This document shows positions 3,421-27,124 of a DNA stretch of 64,000 bases, piece after piece. The notes below the pieces were generated by a model, which saw nothing but the letters and a program-made list of their open reading frames with translations, did not search any database and was not told the DNA's origin. A program made the position numbers and the translations under genes. Location of the stretch: the sequence record PP496438.1. One strand, written 5' to 3'. Positions within the stretch are counted from its first letter, which is position 1; every line of letters begins with the position of its first letter.

Positions 3421-5235
3421 ATGATCCGAATGAACAACCGCATGCGGTTATCAGACAAGAATGGTCGCATGACGACCATCGCGTCACCGCAGAGCATGAG
3501 TGGCAGCATGGGTGCAGGGGGTCACCCCATGACTCGCGCCATGGGTGGCAACGCGTCCACCCGAGACAGCCTGCTCGACGGCATCCTGAAGCTCGACCCG
3601 GATGTCATGCGTCAGATCTATATGGATATGTACCTGTTCGATCCGACCATCGGCGGCGCCACTGACTTGCTGGCCCAGAGCCCGTGGTCGGACTACGATC
3701 TAGTAGACGCTGAGCCGGATCAACTGGACATCTTCTACCGGTCGATGGAACTGCTGAACTACCGAGAGCTGATGCCGGAGTTCACCATCGACTACCTGAC
3801 GCTGGGCGCCGCTGTAGGTACGCCGCTGTACAGCGTGTCGGAAAAGGCATTCACCGACATCATCCCGCACTCCATCGCCAGTATTCAGGTTCAGGAAGTT
3901 CCCCTGTATTCCCAAGACCCTGTGCTGACGCTGCTGGTGCCGGAAGAAATGCGCACGTTCGCGACCAGTCAAGACCCGTACGTGGTCAAGATGCGGCAGC
4001 GCATGACACCGAAGATGGTGGAAGCGTTCCGAGCGCAGGAGGTTGCACTTGATCCGGTGACCACGCTGTACGTACCCCGCACTTCGTTCTCGACAGTGCA
4101 GCAAGGCGTATCGCTGTACACCCGCTTGATCCCGATCTACTTGCTGGAACGTCTTCTGTACCGTGGCACGTTGACCGAGGCTACTCGCCGCCAGCGCTCT
4201 ACGTTGCACATTCAAGCTGGTGACGATCTGTGGAACCCGGACGACAATGAGCTGAACAGTCTGGTGCAGCTGTTCCTGCAAGCCGAGCAAGATCCAGTGT
4301 CGGCCATCGTCGCTACCCAGATGAACGTGCAGACTCAGGAGATTCGAGCTGCCGGTGACTTCTGGAAGTGGACGGATAACCTGGAGCAGTTCAACGACAT
4401 CAAGCTGCGAGGCATGGGGATCAACGAATCCTACATGTCAGGTGATGTGACCTACGACAACCTGAGTACCAGTGTGACCATGTTCCAAGAGCAGCAGGAC
4501 TCGCTCCGGGAAATGATGGTACGCAAGACGCTGTACACCAAGGTGTTCCCGGTCCTGTCGATCACCCACGACTTCCGCCGCAAGGAAGAGTCGCGGCATG
4601 CTCGCCGCGAGATGGCTACGGCCAAGGCTGCGCAGAAGCGTACCCTGAACGATTCGTTCGCGTTCCAGGTGAATGACAAAGCATCGCTGGTCATCCCCAA
4701 GGTGGTATGGCACAAGAAGCTGCGTTCCATGTACACCGAAGGTTCGTTCGATATCCTTGACAAGCTAGCGGAAGCAGGTCTACCGGTTACCCTCCGGGCG
4801 TGGGCTGCTGCTGGGGGTTACGACCTGGACAGCGCTATGCAGGCCATGGCCGACGATGCCAAACTTCGGAAACAGGTGTCAGACTTCAAAGCCGAGAACG
4901 GTATCGATGCCGGTACGGAAAACGACTTCAACCTCGACGGGGATACCGAGCTGTCGATGGTCAGGTCCGCATCCGCATTGCTGGATAAGGCAATGGGTGG
5001 CCGGGGTATGAAGCCACTGGGTCTGCTGGGCCGTGAGTTCAGCGAGGCGGATTCCGAAGTGGTACGCCATGATCACTCTGGCAAACGCAAGTGGGTTCCT
5101 GACCAGCACCGTGCCAAGCGGGAGGAGAACGATAAGGCGATGAAGGCGTTGAAGCAGGCCTCTGATCCGGACTTCCGTGCCAAGACGATTGCCGCCGTTA
5201 ACCGTAGACAAGGCGCGAGAAAGACTCGCGGCTGA
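3421..5235 (+). CDS. Portal protein (putative)
   Basis: 604 aa, follows terminase; YLFDPTIGGATDLLA segment resembles portal N-terminal helix; basic tail. Confidence 0.7.
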   Translation: MIRMNNRMRLSDKNGRMTTIASPQSMSGSMGAGGHPMTRAMGGNASTRDSLLDGILKLDPDVMRQIYMDMYLFDPTIGGATDLLAQSPWSDYDLVDAEPDQLDIFYRSMELLNYRELMPEFTIDYLTLGAAVGTPLYSVSEKAFTDIIPHSIASIQVQEVPLYSQDPVLTLLVPEEMRTFATSQDPYVVKMRQRMTPKMVEAFRAQEVALDPVTTLYVPRTSFSTVQQGVSLYTRLIPIYLLERLLYRGTLTEATRRQRSTLHIQAGDDLWNPDDNELNSLVQLFLQAEQDPVSAIVATQMNVQTQEIRAAGDFWKWTDNLEQFNDIKLRGMGINESYMSGDVTYDNLSTSVTMFQEQQDSLREMMVRKTLYTKVFPVLSITHDFRRKEESRHARREMATAKAAQKRTLNDSFAFQVNDKASLVIPKVVWHKKLRSMYTEGSFDILDKLAEAGLPVTLRAWAAAGGYDLDSAMQAMADDAKLRKQVSDFKAENGIDAGTENDFNLDGDTELSMVRSASALLDKAMGGRGMKPLGLLGREFSEADSEVVRHDHSGKRKWVPDQHRAKREENDKAMKALKQASDPDFRAKTIAAVNRRQGARKTRG

Positions 5236-5260
5236 CATTTATTTTCCATGGAGAGCAAGA

Positions 5261-6688
5261 ATGAAAAACAATCCACAAGTCACGCGCCTTTCCGCCTTGG
5301 CTGCTGCTGGTATCAACGTCAAGTCAGGTTCTCCGGTTGATGTCGTGCACCAGCACACTCGCACTCTGGGCAACACCATCGAGAAGCTGAGCCAGCCGCG
5401 TCAGTGGGCCATTGCTCACCTGATGAACGAAGCGGCCGACCTGCTGGTTGTAGAAACTGGCAGCCTTCAAGACGACTACATCGACTACTTCAAAGGTGCA
5501 CTGGAGAAGTTCGGTGTGTCCTCCCCAGCGGAACTGACCCAAGAGAAGGCTTCCGAGTTCTTCAACTGGATCAGCGCCAACTGGAAGAAGGGAGAAGGCC
5601 CTAAAGCCGAAGCCAGCGTCGAAACTGCCAGCCAGTTCTCCTTCGTCAAAGTCAGCCAGAACGGTAACACCTACCGACTGGAAGCCTCGGACACCGGCAA
5701 CTTCAAATCCGTCATGATCTGGAAGGGTGGCATGTGGACGAAGCCAGGTCCGGACGAAGCGTTCAAGGAGAAAGAGCCGCACCGCATGCTGGGTGCCCTG
5801 CGCACGCCCAACGGTGCAGAACTGGCTACCCTCAACCTGCCGGAAACCCCAGTGGCGAGCATGGAAGAGATGGCCGAGCTGTTCGGCGCCATGGGTATCG
5901 AAGAGAGCGAGATCCGTCGCTTCTACGGCGGTGGTCCAGAGTGGAATGATCGCAGCGTCTACGATGGCAACATCCCGAGCGTATCCCCGGCCAATCTGGG
6001 TGTGAACCCAACTTACGCCTACACCGACATGCACCCGCTGCGTGCCTACGAGGCGGAAGACACCATCCGTATCAATGGTCTGGACGCCACGTTGCAATCC
6101 ATTGACAACGGACAGGCTGTGTTCACGGTTGACGGCGTAGATACAACCACGGTGCCGCTGGACAACATCGTGGTCGCTGAAGGTGAAGCCTCGGTAGTAG
6201 CCACCGCCATGGTATCTCATCGCGTACTGGTTACCGCTGGTCACGAAGACCTGACTCAGTACAAGTCGCTGCGTCACGACTTCGAGACTGTTACCGCGAA
6301 CCACCAAGAGCTGTCGCAAGTCAAGGTCGGCCCAGCGCTGCAAACCCTCGCCAAGGCGGGTAACCGTCGCGCTCTGGTACTGGCCCACGCCGGTGTGCAG
6401 CGTATCAACGAAGGTCATGCGCTGCTCAAAGCCTCCATCGGCTACGGCAAGGAAGCGGCGACCGCCAGTGTCATCACAGAGCTGGCCGATCTGAACAACC
6501 TGTGTGGCAAGGATCAAGTGTCGGCACAAGACGTGATCGACTCCGCGCCAGTGGTCACTCATCTGAAGCAGGGTGAGTTCAAGGCCGACATGCCGGACGT
6601 GGTTGACTCTTCAGACTTCGAGCTGAACGATCCGCAAGCCGAACAGGCGTCCACGCGCAAGAGCCGCTTCCCAAGCCGCAAGCGCTAA
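5261..6688 (+). CDS. Head-associated (scaffold/internal) protein, putative
   Basis: Start moved to ATG 5261 (GGAG SD; avoids portal overlap); lies between portal and protease; several ETA/ATA motifs. Confidence 0.55.
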   Translation: MKNNPQVTRLSALAAAGINVKSGSPVDVVHQHTRTLGNTIEKLSQPRQWAIAHLMNEAADLLVVETGSLQDDYIDYFKGALEKFGVSSPAELTQEKASEFFNWISANWKKGEGPKAEASVETASQFSFVKVSQNGNTYRLEASDTGNFKSVMIWKGGMWTKPGPDEAFKEKEPHRMLGALRTPNGAELATLNLPETPVASMEEMAELFGAMGIEESEIRRFYGGGPEWNDRSVYDGNIPSVSPANLGVNPTYAYTDMHPLRAYEAEDTIRINGLDATLQSIDNGQAVFTVDGVDTTTVPLDNIVVAEGEASVVATAMVSHRVLVTAGHEDLTQYKSLRHDFETVTANHQELSQVKVGPALQTLAKAGNRRALVLAHAGVQRINEGHALLKASIGYGKEAATASVITELADLNNLCGKDQVSAQDVIDSAPVVTHLKQGEFKADMPDVVDSSDFELNDPQAEQASTRKSRFPSRKR

Positions 6689-6698
6689 TCATCTGGAC

Positions 6699-6718
6699 AG
6701 GGGATCGCAAGGTCCCCT
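6699..6718 (+). repeat. GCAA-tetraloop hairpin, copy 1 of GGGAYC-GCAA-GGTCCC
   Basis: AGGGGATC GCAA GGTCCCCT; near-identical copies at 13950 and 49770. Confidence 0.7.
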
Positions 6719-6734
6719 CATCAGGAACTTGACT

Positions 6735-8771
6735 ATGACAATCAAGAGTGCTACATTTGCGGTGGCTGAATCGCAAGCTCAAGGCCTAGCCAACTCCATG
6801 GGATGGCCGGGTGAGGTAATGGACAACGGTGACGGCACTGTCACTCTGTCGCCACCCGACGCATGGGACGATGAAGAGAATCCCGGCAAGGTGGCCGCGT
6901 CCAAGCTGACCGGCAACAAGGACTGTCACGTCTTCGCCAGTATGGCGGTGCCCAGTGAAGGTGAGTGGATGGCTGTAGTCATTCAAGGTACACCGGCGCT
7001 GGTACTCATCGACCAAGGGTCTGGTGAAGGCTGGTTGACCCTTCAGGCCCCTGCGGACTTCGATGTTCCGGAGAGCGTGCTGATTCCTTTCCAACAACGC
7101 TTGACCCAAACGGAAACTGCTTCAATGGACCTTGAACAAGACGTAGAACTGGCAGCAGGGAAGAAAAAATCGGAAGTGGACCAACTTATCGAACTGCGAC
7201 AGGAATACGATAAGCTTCAATTCTCAAAGTCGAAATTGAGCGTACACGGTAAGAACCCTACCAGCTCTCGTATCATCTCAGCGAAGAAAGGGTTGATAGA
7301 ACGGGAGAAGGAATTCAAGGACAAGTTGAAGAAATTGGTCCCGTCGGGTCGTATTCCTACCATGGAGAGTTTGCAGAATCGTAAGATGCGGGAATCGGGA
7401 ATTAAACCTCCGACCAAAGCTGAGAAGGATTCGGCCAGTGAGCGTCGGATGTTGAAGAGTGAAAAAGACAGGCAGACGAGAGTAGCTACTACAGTAAAGA
7501 AACACGGAGTAACTGAATCGGAAGCCAATACCTTGCACCGGGGCAAATACCCTAAGTCCTATTATAAGGATGAACGGGACCTGGATGAGATCAGTCATAA
7601 GTTGAAAAATCCTAGGCTTACGGATGAGCAAGAAGCTAAGTTGGAGAAAGAGTTGAAAGACTTGCGCACGAAGTTCAAGGAAAAGAAGAAGAAATACGAT
7701 GCCGTCCTCAAGGAAGGGCGGGAGGAATCTTCGGTTCAGCCGGATACCCGTACGCAGGTTCTGGCTAACGTCTCCAGCGACCCGGCCACTCCTGCGTATC
7801 AGGAAGCATCTATCACGGGAGTTACACCAGAAGGCCACATCTCAGTAGCATTCGCTGACGGCGATATCGGTGTGTACCAAGGTAAGTTCGACCCTGCTGG
7901 TCTGATGCCAATCGCGGAAGCGGCAGGCGTTGAAGTTGCCAGCTTCAGACACCACACCATGGTTCTGGCCAACGTTGGCACTGCGGCAGCACCTGAATAC
8001 GCCGAAGCAGAGGTGATTGGTTCCACCGAGGAAGGCCATCTGGAAGTCGCGTTCGCCGATGGTGACGTGGGCATCTACCGTTCCTTGTTCCACCCTACCG
8101 GTATCTTGCCGCTGGGTGTGACTGCCGAGACGGCCAGTGTGCTCATCGAGGTGGCCGCACGTACGGCAATGACCCCGGAGCAGAAGCTCAAGCGTGCACA
8201 GGACCTGCTCAAGCTGCGTACGCTGCACGACAAGTACGAGACCAACACCGACGCCCTGAAAGGCAAGAAAGGTCCGGAGAACAAAGCCAAGCGGGACAAG
8301 AACAACGAGGACAAGGCCAAGCTCCGTGCCAAGCTGGACAAGATGGGTGTCACATCCCTGCCGAGCAAAGCTCACCTGCAGCGTACCATCAAGCAGCACA
8401 GCGATCTGCCGACCCGTATGCGTGCATCGGACAAGAAGCCTGCTGCTAAGGTACCAACGAATAAGGCAGCACGGGACGCGGCCAAGAAGAAGTATGCGCC
8501 TGCTAAAGAGGACAAAGGATTAGACATGCGGATTAAGGCTCCGGGGTATGCTGAAAGGAATTTCGGCCCTGCTGCCATGAAACGAAAAGAGGAAAGAAAG
8601 TCTTTGCCCAAAGCTACTCAGGACAAGATCAAGAAGTTGGAAGCAAAGATAGAAGAGACGCTTACGGACATCCATAAGGGTTCCATCAGTAAAAGGGACG
8701 TTCAGACTGCCCGCGACCAAGTTAAGGCTTGGAAAGAGCAAGTCAAAGAACTTTCTACCCCGGCTAAGTAA
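6735..8771 (+). CDS. Lys-rich mosaic internal head protein with two Tudor/SH3-like repeats
   Basis: Repeats VLANV..PxY...GH.xVAFADGD.GxY at about 7755-7913 and 7959-8118; Lys-rich, AT-richer blocks; ATG 6735 with AGGA SD. Confidence 0.6.
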   Translation: MTIKSATFAVAESQAQGLANSMGWPGEVMDNGDGTVTLSPPDAWDDEENPGKVAASKLTGNKDCHVFASMAVPSEGEWMAVVIQGTPALVLIDQGSGEGWLTLQAPADFDVPESVLIPFQQRLTQTETASMDLEQDVELAAGKKKSEVDQLIELRQEYDKLQFSKSKLSVHGKNPTSSRIISAKKGLIEREKEFKDKLKKLVPSGRIPTMESLQNRKMRESGIKPPTKAEKDSASERRMLKSEKDRQTRVATTVKKHGVTESEANTLHRGKYPKSYYKDERDLDEISHKLKNPRLTDEQEAKLEKELKDLRTKFKEKKKKYDAVLKEGREESSVQPDTRTQVLANVSSDPATPAYQEASITGVTPEGHISVAFADGDIGVYQGKFDPAGLMPIAEAAGVEVASFRHHTMVLANVGTAAAPEYAEAEVIGSTEEGHLEVAFADGDVGIYRSLFHPTGILPLGVTAETASVLIEVAARTAMTPEQKLKRAQDLLKLRTLHDKYETNTDALKGKKGPENKAKRDKNNEDKAKLRAKLDKMGVTSLPSKAHLQRTIKQHSDLPTRMRASDKKPAAKVPTNKAARDAAKKKYAPAKEDKGLDMRIKAPGYAERNFGPAAMKRKEERKSLPKATQDKIKKLEAKIEETLTDIHKGSISKRDVQTARDQVKAWKEQVKELSTPAK

Positions 8772-12840: not shown

Positions 12841-12978
12841 GTAAATGATCCATGTATCGGAGGTACCGGGGCTAGAGTCATAGCTGGTTCCGGGAGTCAC
12901 CCTAAGAGGTGTTGTGCTGAGGATTTCACCCTCTTAGGTTTCGTCCGCGCTTTCCTTACCGATTGCGCGGACTTTTTT
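12841..12978 (+). ncRNA. Candidate small structured RNA
   Basis: GTAAATGA motif, two hairpins (12866-12893, 12901-12938), then terminator; only 7- and 12-codon + strand ATG ORFs. Confidence 0.35.
12943..12978 (+). terminator. Rho-independent terminator
   Basis: GTCCGCGC / GCGCGGAC followed by TTTTTT. Confidence 0.8.
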
Positions 12979-19912: not shown

Positions 19913-20013
19913 CTGTACTTTTCTACCTTTTCCTCCCGACTTACTACCCCTTGGGCAAGCTAATTCCAAGCATGTCCAACGAAATATATAACCTGCTTTA
20001 GGAGTGCTACCAG

Positions 20014-22887
20014 ATGTATGTAATCCGCCGAGACGGAAGTCGTTCCTTGTTCCAGAGCGAAAAAATCCGGGCTGCTATTGAACGAGCCTTCTTCGCGGTA
20101 CACGGTCGCGACGCTGATATTCCCACACAGACTGGCCGTGTCACTCAGGCAGTTGAGGCTGGCTTGTCCAGTCAAGAATCTGTCCACATCGAAGTCATTC
20201 AGGAAGGTGTACTTGCTGCACTTATCGCTGAAGGCCACCCCCGCGTCGAGCATGCATACCGCGTGTACCGAGACGCCCGCACTGCACAGCGTGAGCTGCC
20301 CCAGGCTTACACTGATGAGAACGGTACTGCTATCAGCATCCCGGCTCTCACCGACATCCTCGCCCGCGTATCCTTCCGCCTGCCCTACGACGTGACGGTC
20401 CACTTGGACCTGGTGGCCGTAGCGCGCTCGGCGTTCCTGCAGATGTTCAACGGGATCAAGGCCGCTGACGTGCACAACGCACTGATCTTGGCGACCCGTG
20501 CGTTCATCGAGCGAGCGCCAGAGTACAGCAATCTGGCAGCGCAACTGCTGCTGGCTCAGACCGCCCGCGAAGTGTGGGATCTTGACGCCACCACGTACCC
20601 CACTGCCGAGACCTACGCCAAGTGCTACAAGCAGGAGACGGTAAGGTTGCTGCTCATCGGCGTGAAGGACGGCATCTACGACCCTACGCTGACCACCAGT
20701 GGCAAACGCGGCTTTGACCTTGAGCTGCTCCGAGCGGCAATCAAGCCGGAACGCGACCTGCAGTTCGACTACTTGGGTTTGCAGACCCTGTACGACCGCT
20801 ACTTCATTCGCCGCGCCGGTGAAGGCGTTCGTATCGAAATGCCGCAGACGTTCTTCATGCGCGTGGCAATGGGCCTGGCGATCCTCGAAAGCGATCCGAC
20901 ATCCTCGGCGCTTGAGTTCTACGACGTGTTGTCCACGTTCGACTACATGGCCTCGACCCCGACCCTGTTCAACGCAGGCACCACCCACAGCCAGATGTCG
21001 AGTTGCTACTTGACCACTGTGCCGGACGACCTGCTGGGCATCTACGGTGCCATCCAAGACAACGCCATGCTGTCCAAGTACGCTGGCGGTCTGGGCAACG
21101 ACTGGACGCCGGTGCGTGCACTGGGAAGCCTGATCAAAGGCACCAACGGCAGATCGCAGGGCGTGGTTCCGTTCCTCAAGGTGGTCAACGATACCGCCGT
21201 CGCTGTGAACCAAGGCGGAAAGCGCAAGGGTGCCGTGTGTGCATACCTTGAAACGTGGCACATGGACATCGAAGAGTTCACCGAGCTGCGCAAGAACACA
21301 GGTGATGATCGTCGTCGTACCCACGACATGAACACCGCCAACTGGGTTCCTGACCTGTTCATGGATCGACAGATGAAGGACATGGATTGGACCTTGTTCA
21401 CTCCGTCGGAATGCCCTGACCTCCACGAGCTGTACGGCGAGTCTTTCAAAGCCCGTTACGAGTTCTACGAGGCGGAAGCTGCCGCTGGCCGTATCCAGAC
21501 CTTCAAGACCGTGCGCGCCAAGGACTTGTACCGCAAGATCCTGTCCATGATCTTCGAAACCGGCCATCCATGGATCACGTTCAAAGATCCGTGCAACATC
21601 CGCAGCCCGCAGCAACACGTCGGCGTCGTGCACAGCTCCAACCTGTGTACTGAGATCACCCTGAACACGAAGTCCTCCACGCCTGAACTCAAGGACGGCG
21701 AGACGGCAGTGTGCAACTTGGGTTCGATCAACCTGCCACGCCACTTGAAATACGTGGGCGAAGGTGGACAGTCTCTGGATATCGACCACGAGAAGCTGAA
21801 GCGCACCGTGACTCTGGCCGTGCGTATGTTGGACAACGTGATCGACATCAACTTCTACCCGACCAAGGAAGCGAAGAACAGCAACATGCGCCACCGTCCG
21901 ATCGGTCTGGGTGTCATGGGCTTCCAAGACGTGTTGTACGCCAACAACGTCGGCTATGACAGCGAGCTGGCTACGTTCTGGGCGGGCTACTTCCAGCGGT
22001 CCATCGCCTTGTACGCCATCAACGCATCATGTGATCTGGCCCAACTACGCGGTGCGTACGAATCATTCCAAGGTTCGGATTGGTCGCTGGGTGTTCTTCC
22101 AGTTCACACGTTCCAAACCCAGATCGATATCCGTCGTCGTCAGGGCTTCAAGGTGGAAGCAGCGCAGAAAGCCCAAGATCATGCGTACTTTATCGGCAAA
22201 ACCAAGATCAATGGCAAGACGCTGGCCGAACTGGAAAGCTACTTGGCGAACAAGGTAACTCACGGCATGCGTAACAGCAACGTGATGGCGATTGCGCCGA
22301 CGGCTACCATCTCGAACATCGTGGGTGTGACTCAGAGCATCGAGCCTACGTACGAGCAGGTGTTCGTCAAGGACAACCTGAGCGGCAAGTTCACCGTGAT
22401 CAACCGCTTCTTGGTTGAGCAGCTGCGTAATTGCGGTCTGTGGGACTCGGACATGCTCGACCAGCTCAAGATGAACAACGGGTCCATTCAGGTAATCCCT
22501 GAAATCCCGGAAGGCATCAAGGACGTGTATCGCACCGCGTTCGAGTACGAGCCTGAAGTGCTGATCAACTGTGCCATCCAGCGTCAGATCCCAATCGATC
22601 AGGCACAGTCGCTCAATCTGTACATGGCGAACCCGTCGGGTAAGAAGCTGGCGAACACGTACGACTACGGCTTCGAGATTGGGTTGAAGACCACGTATTA
22701 CCTCCGCGCCAAGGCTGCGTCGTCCATCGAGAAGTCCACCAGTCGTACCGGCGGCGAGCTGAACAGCGTCAAGAACGCTGCTAAGGTAGAAGCCCCCGTT
22801 GCTACTCCAATGCCGGAAGCTGAAGGTGCTGCTTGCTTCCTGCGTCCAGGTGATCCGGGCTTCGCAGAGTGCGAAGCGTGCCAGTAG
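20014..22887 (+). CDS. nrdA: Class Ia ribonucleotide reductase alpha subunit with two ATP cones
   Basis: VIRRDG ATP cone, PTLFNAGT, SSCY, SNLCTEI, CNLGS, TYY, C-terminal CEACQ. Confidence 0.97.
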   Translation: MYVIRRDGSRSLFQSEKIRAAIERAFFAVHGRDADIPTQTGRVTQAVEAGLSSQESVHIEVIQEGVLAALIAEGHPRVEHAYRVYRDARTAQRELPQAYTDENGTAISIPALTDILARVSFRLPYDVTVHLDLVAVARSAFLQMFNGIKAADVHNALILATRAFIERAPEYSNLAAQLLLAQTAREVWDLDATTYPTAETYAKCYKQETVRLLLIGVKDGIYDPTLTTSGKRGFDLELLRAAIKPERDLQFDYLGLQTLYDRYFIRRAGEGVRIEMPQTFFMRVAMGLAILESDPTSSALEFYDVLSTFDYMASTPTLFNAGTTHSQMSSCYLTTVPDDLLGIYGAIQDNAMLSKYAGGLGNDWTPVRALGSLIKGTNGRSQGVVPFLKVVNDTAVAVNQGGKRKGAVCAYLETWHMDIEEFTELRKNTGDDRRRTHDMNTANWVPDLFMDRQMKDMDWTLFTPSECPDLHELYGESFKARYEFYEAEAAAGRIQTFKTVRAKDLYRKILSMIFETGHPWITFKDPCNIRSPQQHVGVVHSSNLCTEITLNTKSSTPELKDGETAVCNLGSINLPRHLKYVGEGGQSLDIDHEKLKRTVTLAVRMLDNVIDINFYPTKEAKNSNMRHRPIGLGVMGFQDVLYANNVGYDSELATFWAGYFQRSIALYAINASCDLAQLRGAYESFQGSDWSLGVLPVHTFQTQIDIRRRQGFKVEAAQKAQDHAYFIGKTKINGKTLAELESYLANKVTHGMRNSNVMAIAPTATISNIVGVTQSIEPTYEQVFVKDNLSGKFTVINRFLVEQLRNCGLWDSDMLDQLKMNNGSIQVIPEIPEGIKDVYRTAFEYEPEVLINCAIQRQIPIDQAQSLNLYMANPSGKKLANTYDYGFEIGLKTTYYLRAKAASSIEKSTSRTGGELNSVKNAAKVEAPVATPMPEAEGAACFLRPGDPGFAECEACQ

Positions 22888-22912
22888 TCTGATCCAGCTG
22901 TAATGTAAATGA

Positions 22913-22946
22913 TAGGGCGGGCAGGCAACTGTTTCCGCCCTATTTC
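22913..22946 (+). terminator. Terminator-like hairpin directly after a GTAAATGA motif
   Basis: ATAGGGCGG..CAG GCAA CTG..CCGCCCTAT TT. Confidence 0.55.
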
Positions 22947-22971
22947 ATCTGTTGCACATGGGGCTTACCTT

Positions 22972-23757
22972 ATGAGTGCTGTACCTAATCGTGTGTCCCT
23001 AGTGGACAAGCGCATCTTCAACGGAAAGGCTGATGTCAACGCCTTGCTACCGCTTCGGTATCCGTGGGCCTATGACGCCTACGTGAACGCGAACAAGAAC
23101 CACTGGCTTCCCGGCGACATCCACCTCGATCTGGATCGAGTCAACCATGAACATCAGTCGTACTGGCCTGCTGTCAGCCGGTTCCTGATCAGCGTAGCCC
23201 AGCGCGCCGAGATCGATCGACAGCACATGCTCTTCGTGTATCGGGCCACCACGGCGCCCGAGGTTCGTCAGCGCTTCCTCCGTATGGGTCAGGAAGACAC
23301 CATTGCCATCATGCTGGCGCAAGACATGGGGCTGGCACTGGAAGACTTCATCCCGTCTCCAGAGGTGGTGTTGTACAAGACGGAGAAAGCCTACCTGGCC
23401 GGGCTCATGGAACTGATCGAGCGTAAGCTCTTGTCCGTGGCCGAAGGCAAGTACATCCTCGAAGAAGTACCGGGGGTGCACCAGAATATCCGCAAAGCAG
23501 TTGAGAACATCCACCGGGACGTGGACTCTCAGTTGGACTTCCTGTTCACCCTGCTACGCACCTTACTTGGCGAATGCGAGGTCAGCTCCTACCGGGGTTG
23601 CAACACGCAAGCGTTCTGGCAGAGCAGCAACCAGTACCACGCCCACCTGAACTCGATTGTTCTGAACGTTCTGACGGGGGCGCCGGTTACCCCTACGCCG
23701 TATCAGACACAGGTGGTCGCAGACAACCAAACCAAAGACACACTGACCTGGGACTGA
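22972..23757 (+). CDS. Degenerate RNR beta paralog (metal ligands and radical Tyr lost)
   Basis: KRIFNGKADVN..YPWAY..NHWLP, TAPEVRQ..LR; EExxH becomes EDxxA; RDExxH becomes RDVxxQ; ends LTWD. Confidence 0.75.
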   Translation: MSAVPNRVSLVDKRIFNGKADVNALLPLRYPWAYDAYVNANKNHWLPGDIHLDLDRVNHEHQSYWPAVSRFLISVAQRAEIDRQHMLFVYRATTAPEVRQRFLRMGQEDTIAIMLAQDMGLALEDFIPSPEVVLYKTEKAYLAGLMELIERKLLSVAEGKYILEEVPGVHQNIRKAVENIHRDVDSQLDFLFTLLRTLLGECEVSSYRGCNTQAFWQSSNQYHAHLNSIVLNVLTGAPVTPTPYQTQVVADNQTKDTLTWD

Positions 23758-23759
23758 CT

Positions 23760-24734
23760 ATGACCGTTCTTACTCACGTAAACCCGCACGAACATGAGTG
23801 GGCGTTGGAAAAGACCTTGGCGTCAAACTCGAACCATTGGTTGCCCCAAGAGATTGGACTGTCCACCGACATCCTGCAATGGAAGACCGGACAGTTGAGC
23901 GACGACGAGATGCGCATGGTCAAGCGTAATCTAGGGTTCTTCTCCACCGCTGATTCGCTGGCCGCGAACAACATCATTCTCGGCACCATACGCCACATCA
24001 AGAACAGGAACTGTCGCCACTACCTGTTCCGACAAGCGTATGAAGAGGCATTCCACACGGAGTCCTACGCGTACGTGATCGAGAGCCTTGGCTTGGATCA
24101 GGGTGAGATCTTCAATGCGTACAACGAGATCGAGTCGATCCGGGCCAAAGACGAATTCCTTCTTCCGTACATCGAGGTGCTGACTGATCCGGCGTTCCAA
24201 GCGGACACCATCGAGAACGTCCAGATCCTGCTCAAGTCGCTGTTCGCATTCGCGTGCATCATGGAAGGTCTGTTCTTCTACGTCGGCTTCGTCCAGATGC
24301 TGTCGCTGGGCCGTCGCAACAAGTTGCCCGGTTCCTCGCAAGAGTTCCAGTACATCCTGCGCGACGAGAGCGGCCACTGCAACTTCGGTATCGACCTTAT
24401 CAACACGATCAAGCGCGAGTACCCCGGCGTGTGGACTGCGGAACTCCAGAAGGAGTGCACCGACATGTTGCGCACCGGCGTTGACCTGGAGCAAGCCTAC
24501 GCGGTAGACACTCTGCCCAACGGTGTGCTGGGTCTGAACGCGGACAACACACGCCAGTACCTGGAGTTCATCGCGGACCGCCGCTGCATTCAGGTGGAGC
24601 TGCCGGTACAGTACAACCAGAACGACAACCCGTTCCCGTGGATGTCGGAGATGGTTGACTTGAACAACGAGGAGAACTTCTTCGAGAAGAAGGTGCTTGC
24701 GTACCAGCAAGCCGCCGGACTGGAGTGGGACTAA
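23760..24734 (+). CDS. nrdB: Class Ia ribonucleotide reductase beta subunit
   Basis: FFSTAD, EEAFH..Y, MEGLFFY, RDESGH; ends LEWD. Confidence 0.95.
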   Translation: MTVLTHVNPHEHEWALEKTLASNSNHWLPQEIGLSTDILQWKTGQLSDDEMRMVKRNLGFFSTADSLAANNIILGTIRHIKNRNCRHYLFRQAYEEAFHTESYAYVIESLGLDQGEIFNAYNEIESIRAKDEFLLPYIEVLTDPAFQADTIENVQILLKSLFAFACIMEGLFFYVGFVQMLSLGRRNKLPGSSQEFQYILRDESGHCNFGIDLINTIKREYPGVWTAELQKECTDMLRTGVDLEQAYAVDTLPNGVLGLNADNTRQYLEFIADRRCIQVELPVQYNQNDNPFPWMSEMVDLNNEENFFEKKVLAYQQAAGLEWD

Positions 24735-24735
24735 C

Positions 24736-24837
24736 ATGATCTATACGTGTCCGAAGTGTAACCGGTTGCATTCAGATGGGACAAGCAACTTCGAGCTAGT
24801 CGTTCTGTGCCGGTATTGCAACCCACTGAAGGGGTAA
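24736..24837 (+). CDS. 33-aa Cys4 (Zn-ribbon/rubredoxin-like) peptide (absent from ORF track)
   Basis: MIYTCPKCNRLHSDGTSNFELVVLCRYCNPLKG; starts 1 nt after nrdB stop. Confidence 0.6.
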   Translation: MIYTCPKCNRLHSDGTSNFELVVLCRYCNPLKG

Positions 24838-24851
24838 TACGGTCCGGTAAA

Positions 24852-24882
24852 TAGGGGAGTGAGCAATCGCTTCCCTATTTTT
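24852..24882 (+). terminator. Terminator-like hairpin overlapping a GGTAAATAG motif
   Basis: ATAGGGGAGTGA GCAA TCGCTTCCCTAT TTTT. Confidence 0.6.
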
Positions 24883-24898
24883 ATGTCTGGAGTCTTCT

Positions 24899-25333
24899 AT
24901 GAAGCGGCCAGTGTGGGTCACTTTGACCGGTAAGACCAAGAAGCACAACGTCCCCTACCTGATTGATCAGCGCTACGTGCGTGAGTGGCTGCACTGGGGA
25001 CTGAAGATGCAGCCAACGCAGTTTCCACCTCCATCGGACACGCTGGTAGGTTCCCACTCCGCTTCGTGGAAGTTCTGGGACATTCGCAAGTTCTACCTGT
25101 GGAGCGTTACGTGCACCTGCATCTACACCGGTGAAGTGCACCACCTTGGCGGCGGTTCATGGCTGACCAAATCTCAAGCGAAAGTCCTGCAAGATGATGG
25201 TATCGAGCTGGGTATCTTGTTGAACACCATTCCACAGTGGGCGGTGGATATGGGCCTGCTCAAGCCTTGGTGCTTCGTACAGGACCTATTCGCATTCCGC
25301 AATCCCTTCCCTCAACGGGAGAAGAACAAATGA
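24899..25333 (+). CDS. Hypothetical Trp-rich protein
   Basis: GGAG SD. Confidence 0.6.
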   Translation: MKRPVWVTLTGKTKKHNVPYLIDQRYVREWLHWGLKMQPTQFPPPSDTLVGSHSASWKFWDIRKFYLWSVTCTCIYTGEVHHLGGGSWLTKSQAKVLQDDGIELGILLNTIPQWAVDMGLLKPWCFVQDLFAFRNPFPQREKNK

Positions 25334-25969: not shown

Positions 25970-27124
25970 ATGAACGATGATCTGAAAATCACAGAGGTTA
26001 ACTCTGTGAAGGAATACGATGAACACGTGGAAGAGCTGCTGCTGACCTTGTTGGGGCTGGGTTCTTCCACTACTCGCAACGACCAAGGTACTCGCAAGCT
26101 CGGCGCCACATCCATCAGCTTCAACCTGCTGTCGATGTATCCCTCGATCCCGATGACCACGCTGCGCCCGATCTCGTGGACCAGTATCCTCGGCGAGATG
26201 CTGGGTTTCATCCGTGGCGAGACCAACGTGCAAGCGTTCAAGGGCCTTGGCACCAACGTCTGGAACGCCAATGCCAAGGAGCCCGCGTGGAAGAACGACT
26301 TGCTGGCGCCGAACGAAGGTGACCTCGGGCCGATCTACGGCAAGCAGTGGCGCAAGTGGGAAGATATCAAGCTGGCGGATTATGGACGTGATCTGTCCAA
26401 GCTAGGCTACACACAGGTGGGCTGGCTGCATGACGGATCGAGTTGGGAGACTGTAGGCTCGCCGAATCCCGGTGTATGGCGTCGGGAGGTTGACCAGCTG
26501 ATGGACGCCTTGAACCGTATTAAGTCCAATCCTAACGATCGTCGCGCTGTCATCTCGGCGTGGAATCCCGGTGACATGGATTTCATGGCTCTGCCGCCGT
26601 GCCACGTGATGATGCAGCTGACCACGGTGCCTTACGCCCAGCACAAGTACGGCACCTACACAGATGGTGCCAGCGACTTCGAGATCGACTTCAACGAGAA
26701 GTACCCGGAGCAGGTAGTATCGGATACTGTCGAGCCGAATAGCAGCGGAGAGACTGTTCCCCGGTACGCGCTCAATCTGGTCGTGACTCAGCGCAGCCAA
26801 GACACCCTGCTCGGTCGGGCGTATAACATTCCGGCGTATGCCACTCTGCTTCGCCTGTTCGCTCACCTGCTGGAAATGGCGCCGGGTAATCTGGAGTTCA
26901 ACGTCGGCGACCAGCATTTGTACAGCAACCATGAAAAGGCGGCTGACGAGATTACTGACCGCGAAAGTCTGGACAAGGATGAAGAAGGCGAAAAGCTATT
27001 CCAACTCTCTATCGTCGGCGTGGACAAGTTCAAAGATCTGGACACCCTCACCGCCGACAACTTCATTCTGACCCATCAGGTTACACATGACAAGCTGGAG
27101 TCCGACACCAAGATGACGGTGTAG
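25970..27124 (+). CDS. thyA: Thymidylate synthase with insertions
   Basis: RNDQGT, GDLGPIYGKQWR, RRAVISAWNP, ALPPCH, QRSQD, YNI, GDQHLYSNH. Confidence 0.92.
   Translation: MNDDLKITEVNSVKEYDEHVEELLLTLLGLGSSTTRNDQGTRKLGATSISFNLLSMYPSIPMTTLRPISWTSILGEMLGFIRGETNVQAFKGLGTNVWNANAKEPAWKNDLLAPNEGDLGPIYGKQWRKWEDIKLADYGRDLSKLGYTQVGWLHDGSSWETVGSPNPGVWRREVDQLMDALNRIKSNPNDRRAVISAWNPGDMDFMALPPCHVMMQLTTVPYAQHKYGTYTDGASDFEIDFNEKYPEQVVSDTVEPNSSGETVPRYALNLVVTQRSQDTLLGRAYNIPAYATLLRLFAHLLEMAPGNLEFNVGDQHLYSNHEKAADEITDRESLDKDEEGEKLFQLSIVGVDKFKDLDTLTADNFILTHQVTHDKLESDTKMTV

Follow-up and report, generated by a model that had tools for sequence, protein, structure and literature searches.

The window analysed here is a stretch of 64,000 nucleotides (nt) from sequence record PP496438.1, the 202-kb genome of Pseudomonas phage vB_PpuM-SKa-4 (SKa-4), a jumbo phage which infects Pseudomonas putida. 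Between the genes for the large (alpha) and small (beta) subunits of ribonucleotide reductase (RNR), nrdA and nrdB, it carries an open reading frame (ORF) annotated as a hypothetical protein. Our analysis concerns this ORF, which appears to encode a catalytically dead paralog of the neighboring beta subunit and is here called beta-prime. Window bases 20000 to 25000 were 100% identical to the SKa-4 record, with which the window shares its numbering, and eight sister phages were 92 to 99% identical over the same bases. The three genes are listed below; nrdB starts 2 nt past the stop codon of the beta-prime gene, and the nrdA product has a Cys-x-x-Cys pair at its end.

20014..22887, + strand: nrdA, RNR alpha, 957 amino acids (aa); annotated as the large subunit, with ATP-cone, all-alpha, and barrel domains (Pfam PF03477, PF00317, and PF02867)
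22972..23757, + strand: putative dead beta paralog (beta-prime), 261 aa, SKa4_00022; annotated "hypothetical protein," with a predicted R2 fold that lacks the metal site and the radical residues
23760..24734, + strand: nrdB, active-type beta, 324 aa; annotated as the RNR small subunit

The product of nrdB passed the thresholds of both family models applied to it, scoring 501 bits against NCBIfam NF005550 (cut-off, 309) and 265 bits against Pfam Ribonuc_red_sm (PF00268). Beta-prime fell below both, with 61.5 bits against NF005550 and 22.3 bits against Ribonuc_red_sm (gathering threshold, 33.6), the latter match being confined to residues 24 to 107. None of the PHROG or curated families covered it. 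Searching the PDB with phmmer, however, matched residues 6 to 112 to the R2c-type beta 6y2n (E = 5e-12) and to the R2c protein of Chlamydia trachomatis (E = 1e-9). Profile-profile alignment of the paralog family with the adjacent betas by hhalign gave a probability of 94.6% in local mode and 98.4% in global mode over nearly the full length, with a residue-level correspondence between beta-prime and beta that is uncertain outside residues 1 to 112 and 171 to 201. The AlphaFold2 model of beta-prime, made from 11 family members, was a bundle of long helices with a predicted local distance difference test score (pLDDT) of 78 and a predicted template modeling (TM) score of 0.77; the two ends, residues 1 to 24 and 246 to 261, were of low confidence (pLDDT of <50). 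When this model was compared with the PDB by Foldseek, only R2 proteins were returned, and the best of them was again C. trachomatis R2c (probability, 1.0; E of ~5e-5; TM score of ~0.6). These data, from sequence comparison and a predicted structure, identify the ORF at 22972-23757 as a true R2-fold paralog of the adjacent nrdB, and one that is predicted to be catalytically dead. They bear out an initial annotation, made from the DNA letters alone, which had proposed a dead beta paralog beside an intact beta; the R2 homology and fold are present, and the ligand and tyrosine columns are lost.

The residues on which that prediction depends were mapped by hhalign across 11 aligned family members and are given in Escherichia coli numbering. 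In the betas that stand next to a paralog (partnered betas), the six ligands Asp/Glu/His/Glu/Glu/His and the radical Tyr were all present in 8/8 sequences, and the tail Tyr was found in seven, that is, in all those with the C terminus on the contig. The paralogs presented a very different picture. At the position of the first ligand, Asp84, they have Ala, Ser, or His and never a carboxylate; at Glu115, nine of the 11 have Asp or Glu and the others Ala or Leu. No member has a His at the His118 position, a Tyr at the position of the radical Tyr122, an acidic residue at the Glu238 position, or a Tyr at the position of the tail pathway Tyr356, and the His241 position is occupied by Gln in 10 members and by His in none. 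The Glu204 column depends on the alignment, since in local mode the SKa-4 group has Gly or Ala there and six less closely related members have Glu, whereas in global mode the column contains small or hydrophobic residues. In SKa-4 beta-prime itself the six ligand positions read Ala, Asp, Ala, Gly or Met (depending on the alignment), Val, and Gln, so that none is unchanged. In addition, alignment with host NrdB revealed that a segment of approximately 20 residues containing the pathway Tyr, between a P-x-P landmark and the tail, is deleted in beta-prime. The equivalents of Trp48 and Asp237 were retained in all 11 members. The initial annotation had quoted the Glu/His/Tyr and Arg-Asp-Glu-x-x-His stretches of the intact copy together with their degenerate counterparts, and these are as quoted and were paired in the same way by hhalign. 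Its further remark that the first Asp ligand was not evident also holds, as that residue has no counterpart in beta-prime.

Two parts of beta-prime have been kept in a form recognizable from true NrdB proteins.

23002..23115, + strand: N-terminal motif region of beta-prime (residues 11 to 48, starting V-D-K-R-I-F), kept in the paralog and in host NrdB and lost in the partnered beta
23692..23754, + strand: C-terminal tail of beta-prime (residues 241 to 261), comprising a P-T-P-Y motif, a variable linker, and a terminal L-T-W-D

Across the beta-prime family the commonest residue in the N-terminal motif region had a mean share of 0.71. The same motif occurs in the R2c-type NrdBs of the PDB, in 6/6 stand-alone betas from IMG/VR contigs (L015, L021-L026), and in the P. 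putida NrdB P0306 (416 aa), where it lies at residues 80 to 107 behind an 80-residue leader. P0306 is a cluster representative that may differ from the NrdB of the isolation strain, and it was reached by a search with the beta of contig L025. That contig (IMGVR_UViG_3300042010_000106, 312 kb) is classed as viral, and its NrdB shares >90% identity with the chromosomal NrdB of Pseudomonas; this stretch possibly comes from a host, or the contig may have been misclassified. In contrast to the stand-alone betas, 8/8 betas located behind a paralog lack the motif, with a decayed remnant in the distant ones and almost nothing in SKa-4, whose beta aligns with host NrdB (52% identity) from host residue 95 to the end. 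The two neighboring genes have thus undergone a complementary loss visible in their sequences: the partnered beta is without the N-terminal motif, and the dead copy keeps the motif with hardly any change but is without the cofactor residues. Each copy has lost what the other keeps, which is the pattern expected if beta and beta-prime act in one complex. That the dead copy and not the active one has an N-terminal segment typical of host-type NrdB had been pointed out in the initial annotation, and the comparison with P0306 confirms it.

The C terminus of beta docks on alpha. Beta-prime ends in L-T-W-D and the phage beta in L-E-W-D, as had been noted from the ORFs, while the host P. putida NrdB ends in L-S-W-D. 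L258 and W260 of beta-prime are invariant in 11/11 members, giving a terminal pattern for the family of L-x-W-(D/E/N). This tail, taken with the established docking role of the beta C terminus, suggests that beta-prime probably binds an alpha, although its sequence does not tell the alpha of the phage from that of the host.

The frame of beta-prime had been described as intact, and it is: all nine closely related phages have it at 786 nt. The median ratio of nonsynonymous to synonymous substitution rates (dN/dS; Nei-Gojobori method, nine phages) was 0.092 for beta-prime, compared with 0.091 for nrdA and 0.029 for nrdB. Codon columns with only synonymous variation numbered 47, and those with an amino acid change numbered 16. 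Between SKa-4 and the phage Peetri, 41 of 60 differences were synonymous, where 23% would be expected (binomial P = 1.5e-13). Constraint was strongest in the N-terminal motif, at the beginning of helix C, and in the tail, with amino acid variation among the nine phages at 1 of 48 positions in residues 1 to 48, at 0 of 23 in residues 90 to 112, and at 1 of 21 in the tail. Beta-prime is therefore under purifying selection and is not decaying.

Relatives of beta-prime were few. A word-indexed search of 5.8 billion proteins found them at 95, 59, 30, and 30% identity, and when 1.84 billion cluster representatives were searched exhaustively with a profile, eight clusters were obtained at E values of ≤1e-30, followed by a sharp drop. 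In a profile search of the larger collection of 5.8 billion proteins, 11 beta-prime clusters scored 316 to 415 bits, and the next matches were true NrdBs at no more than 138 bits. With two clusters seen only among the 1.84 billion representatives, the family totals approximately 13 clusters, and its alignment is accordingly shallow, with 11 to 13 sequences. Scans of IMG/VR added nothing to the family, yielding only true betas and a single degenerate protein of another kind, and scans of genomes and metagenomes yielded almost solely true NrdBs, matching the N-terminal third. These results suggest that the family is rare but old. The initial annotation had named neutral decay of the paralog, or its absence from relatives, as findings that would speak against its proposal. 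Instead, the paralog was present in the nine close phages and, down to approximately 30% identity, in about 13 clusters, and it occupied the same place in 8/8 loci.

At these eight loci the gene order was invariably nrdA, an optional HNH gene, beta-prime, and nrdB. The spacing between beta-prime and nrdB ranged from a 10-nt overlap to a 4-nt gap, and that between nrdA and the paralog was usually 48 to 128 nt. All of the readable contigs carrying family members (8/8) had a phage-type replication module (clamp-loader ATPase, family A polymerase, and topoisomerase I). In a neighbor-joining tree built from BLOSUM distances, the beta-prime family and the partnered betas each formed a monophyletic group with a matching internal branching order, and beta-prime was found to evolve about twice as fast as the partnered betas (mean distance, 0.67 versus 0.35). 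The tree accommodates either duplication of the phage beta or a separate capture as the origin of beta-prime.

The tight coupling to nrdB, the codivergence of the two copies, and the complementary pattern of N-terminal motif loss lead us to favor the hypothesis that beta-prime is a noncatalytic partner of the active beta within the same complex, the simplest form of which would be a beta/beta-prime heterodimer bound to the phage alpha dimer. On the sequence evidence we assign this reading a probability of approximately 0.5. According to this hypothesis, beta-prime would be made together with the adjacent active beta, and the two would pair as a heterodimer that docks on the phage alpha dimer. 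Beta would carry the dimetal-tyrosyl cofactor and the radical pathway, and beta-prime would give the complex the N-terminal motif that beta has lost as well as a second L-x-W-D tail for alpha. We infer here the physical pairing, the docking of the beta-prime tail on alpha, and the binding partner of the N-terminal motif. Several points weigh against this proposal. The L-x-W-D tail is shared with host NrdB, and the host alpha could just as well be the target of beta-prime. On jumbo-phage-like contigs, further degenerate NrdB-like proteins occur alone, away from nrdA and nrdB, which indicates that roles for a dead R2 protein without an adjacent beta are possible. The tree has no support values and, owing to the long branch, gives no placement of beta-prime relative to the betas. 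Finally, we found no description of a role for the NrdB N-terminal motif in the open-access literature.

The initial annotation had offered two mechanisms, a beta/beta-prime heterodimer and a dominant-negative inhibitor of host RNR. In line with the second of these, the first alternative is that beta-prime acts as a competitor or regulator, a monomer or homodimer that would use its tail, and perhaps its N-terminal motif as well, to occupy the beta-docking site of the host alpha, the phage alpha, or both, and so damp or redirect ribonucleotide reduction or keep the host beta off the phage alpha. Cross-binding is plausible from the common L-x-W-D end of host NrdB, phage beta, and beta-prime; an alpha occupied by beta-prime would be silent, as beta-prime is without the pathway Tyr; and the orphan degenerate proteins on jumbo-phage-like contigs that lack a nearby nrdA or nrdB have the same N-terminal motif and similar tails. 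However, the tail does not discriminate between the phage and host alphas, so that such an inhibitor would hit the phage's own enzyme too. Moreover, a free-standing inhibitor predicts neither the adjacency or near-overlap with nrdB in 8/8 loci nor the codivergence with beta, and it does not explain why the N-terminal motif has decayed in beta only where beta-prime is present. We consider this explanation less likely than the heterodimer, though the tail shared with host NrdB keeps it plausible.

Alternatively, beta-prime may be a transient assembly factor that binds beta only during folding or cofactor loading and stands outside the working holoenzyme. The genomic evidence for this is the same as that for the heterodimer, and there is a precedent in budding yeast, where the roles ascribed to Rnr4 include the folding and iron loading of Rnr2. 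A pure chaperone, however, would not need a conserved alpha-docking tail, and the invariance of L258 and W260 makes this alternative rather improbable.

The R2 scaffold might also have been reused for a function unrelated to RNR, for example, ligand binding or antidefense, with the gene remaining beside nrdB only through shared regulation. The residues now at the former metal site are small, hydrophobic, or polar, with the Gln at the second His position in 10 of 11 members, which would suit such a change, as would the absence of beta-prime from PHROG and curated families; dead viral RNR subunits with new roles are also known, namely, the large-subunit homologues of betaherpesviruses. Yet the strongest constraint falls on the features that beta-prime has in common with true NrdBs (N-terminal motif, first part of helix C, helix F Arg-Asp, and tail), which points to retained RNR contacts, and we regard a wholly new function as improbable. 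Lastly, a decaying pseudogene left by tandem duplication of nrdB, which the loss of every catalytic residue and the subthreshold Pfam score (22.3 against 33.6) might suggest, is ruled out for practical purposes by the dN/dS of 0.09, a frame intact in nine phages and in relatives at 30 to 60% identity, a confidently predicted fold, and the conservation of the upstream element described below.

The closest known parallel to the proposed beta/beta-prime heterodimer is yeast Rnr4 in the Rnr2/Rnr4 heterodimer (PDB 1jk0, chain B). Like beta-prime, Rnr4 is an R2-fold paralog with incomplete metal ligands, found alongside an intact beta whose rate of evolution is lower. If the analogy holds, beta-prime would pair with beta and present its C-terminal tail. 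The two differ in several respects. Their origins are independent: the nearest relatives of beta-prime in sequence and fold are bacterial NrdBs of the PRK07209/R2c type, and 1jk0 chain B was not among the PDB matches of beta-prime in the phmmer search, yet was matched by the phage beta. The loss is more complete in beta-prime, with all six ligand positions differing in SKa-4 and both the radical Tyr and the tail Tyr gone, and its active partner has reciprocally lost the N-terminal motif. Furthermore, beta-prime is encoded by a phage, in a gene that abuts nrdB, and is known here from its sequence, the heterodimer being a proposal. These comparisons identify beta-prime as an analogue of Rnr4 and not an orthologue, as judged from sequence.

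Beta-prime was also compared with other R2 proteins. With host-type Pseudomonas NrdB (NF005550/PRK07209; P0306) it shares the N-terminal motif (32% identity over beta-prime residues 7 to 111), the start of helix C, the helix F Arg-Asp, the P-x-P landmark, and the L-x-W-D terminus, but it is without the 80-residue leader, the metal ligands, the radical Tyr, and the pathway-Tyr segment of about 20 residues. The class Ic R2c proteins (C. trachomatis NrdB, 1syy and 4d8f; 6y2n) were its best neighbors in the PDB and likewise have no radical Tyr; unlike beta-prime, in which no ligand is unchanged, R2c keeps all six ligands and binds Mn/Fe. The metal-free NrdF of class Ie (Mesoplasma florum type; 6gp2 and 8bt4) resembles beta-prime as an R2 protein whose metal ligands have been lost, but NrdF keeps its Tyr, which becomes a 3,4-dihydroxyphenylalanine (DOPA) radical, and works with NrdI, whereas the radical position of beta-prime is Tyr in 0/11 members. 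The ligand and Tyr columns thus rule out membership of beta-prime in class Ic, class Ie, or the R2lox group, and these columns together with the subthreshold family scores also set it apart from NrdB proper. Outside the R2 proteins, the RNR large-subunit homologues of betaherpesviruses are catalytically dead, in viruses with no working RNR, and are reused against host signaling. The likeness is that a virus retains an RNR subunit homologue unable to catalyze; those homologues are of the alpha type, however, and beta-prime is of the beta type and stands beside a complete alpha/beta pair.

Other degenerate R2 proteins were encountered in the course of the searches. Four NrdB-like proteins of 313 to 670 aa, some with long N-terminal extensions, are encoded at L016:5689-7062, L165:3993-6005, L187:4357-5298, and L188:6001-7005. 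Their ligands are partly lost, the N-terminal motif is kept, and the C terminus contains Trp or Phe. The contigs are jumbo-phage-like, with TubZ-like, SNF2 helicase, and AAA neighbors, and nrdA and nrdB were absent from the flanks examined. Contig L060, binned to a metagenome-assembled genome of Candidatus Saccharibacteria, has two tandem R2 genes, at 4920-5996 and 6016-7332. The product of the first still has its N-terminal motif, radical Tyr, and tail, but two of its Glu ligand positions are occupied by Arg; the product of the second is intact, with a decayed N-terminal motif. As far as sequence can tell, this tandem is an intermediate version of the phage arrangement. We also found a 755-aa protein, P0138 (L189:8001-10268), in a bacterial chromosomal context (metagenomic), in which one R2 domain is intact and the R2 domain fused to it is degenerate. 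In the latter, four ligand positions are changed, the pathway-Tyr segment is missing just as it is in the phage paralog, and the acidic C terminus is free. By analogy, this fusion supports the view that an intact R2 unit and a dead one function as a pair. It is a true tandem, whereas five long R2-like proteins of about 650 aa that had been considered as natural fusions proved to be intein-containing NrdBs.

A broader suggestion, which we advance tentatively and think unlikely to hold in full, is that degenerate R2 proteins in which just the N-terminal motif and the alpha-docking tail survive form a wider, undescribed class of phage "pseudo-subunits" acting on class I RNR. In the SKa-4 lineage such a protein would have become an obligatory partner, leaving the working enzyme with a single radical-generating protomer and hence a natural asymmetry; the orphans of other jumbo phages would act on the host enzyme, the beta of which has the same kind of tail; and the N-terminal motif would provide a second contact. 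We found no report of a phage or bacterial beta-prime, or of an inactive phage NrdB, in the open-access literature, in agreement with the remark in the initial annotation that no phage example had been described.

The favored beta/beta-prime pairing would be of interest beyond this phage. Class I RNR works asymmetrically, and to our knowledge its beta component is treated as a homodimer outside budding yeast. In this phage lineage, beta seems to have been divided into two halves, one bearing the radical and the other free of cofactor and retaining the N-terminal motif and the docking tail. If this is correct, it would be an independent natural experiment on the number of active protomers that RNR needs, and it would suggest that an NrdB N-terminal motif common to the Pseudomonas and Chlamydia-type enzymes has a role. 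It would also suggest that phages remodel the enzymes of nucleotide metabolism and do not merely carry them, and a gene family now labeled "hypothetical" or, wrongly, as an ordinary beta subunit would gain a name and a role open to testing.

The beta-prime gene is preceded by sequence features of its own, and the pair is followed by a further hairpin.

22905..22912, + strand: GTAAATGA motif, promoter-like, upstream of beta-prime
22911..22944, + strand: intergenic hairpin between nrdA and the paralog; the RNA fold of 22888-22975 had an energy of -33.1 kcal/mol (z = -3.4 versus shuffles)
24849..24880, + strand: terminator-like hairpin 3' of nrdB, from a consensus scan, with a 14-pair stem; such sites are no commoner in the region than in shuffles

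The presence of an upstream GTAAATGA motif belonging to the paralog, as stated in the initial annotation, was confirmed. The window contains six copies of GTAAATGA (at 12841, 14983, 22905, 34639, 51274, and 60225), where 1.07 would be expected; all are on the + strand, and every copy lies 30 to 90 nt ahead of an ORF start. These observations suggest that GTAAATGA may be part of a phage promoter. The spacer with the motif and hairpin was identical or nearly so across the nine phages. An HNH homing-endonuclease gene is found between nrdA and the paralog in Peetri (L002:3998-4699) and in one distant relative (L019:1265-1996), and in Peetri the motif/hairpin element stays on the paralog side of the inserted gene. 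The hairpin at 24849..24880 might conceivably mark the end of a beta-prime/beta transcription unit. The spacer after nrdB (24735-24898) is variable, with an extra 243-nt ORF in four sister phages (L011:5401-5643).

The nrdB frame is also open for 62 codons upstream of the nrdB start (23574-23759), overlapping the 3' end of the paralog gene in another frame. A frameshift fusion of the paralog and nrdB was considered and rejected, since in five of seven relatives checked this upstream extension was absent or only 4 codons long; high G+C content probably accounts for it.

The PHROG scan of flanking ORFs matched only thymidylate synthase and families of unknown function among those scanned. The publication on these phages, which belong to jumbo cluster G3 of the CEPEST collection, makes no mention of RNR; it reports unusually poor DNA yields from the jumbo phages with one kit. 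Downstream of nrdB, and separated from it by three small ORFs, is a further annotated gene of nucleotide metabolism.

25970-27124: thymidylate synthase (annotation)

The product of this gene is a 384-aa homologue in which the Pfam match extends over residues 33 to 377 on only 245 profile positions, indicating approximately 100 inserted residues.

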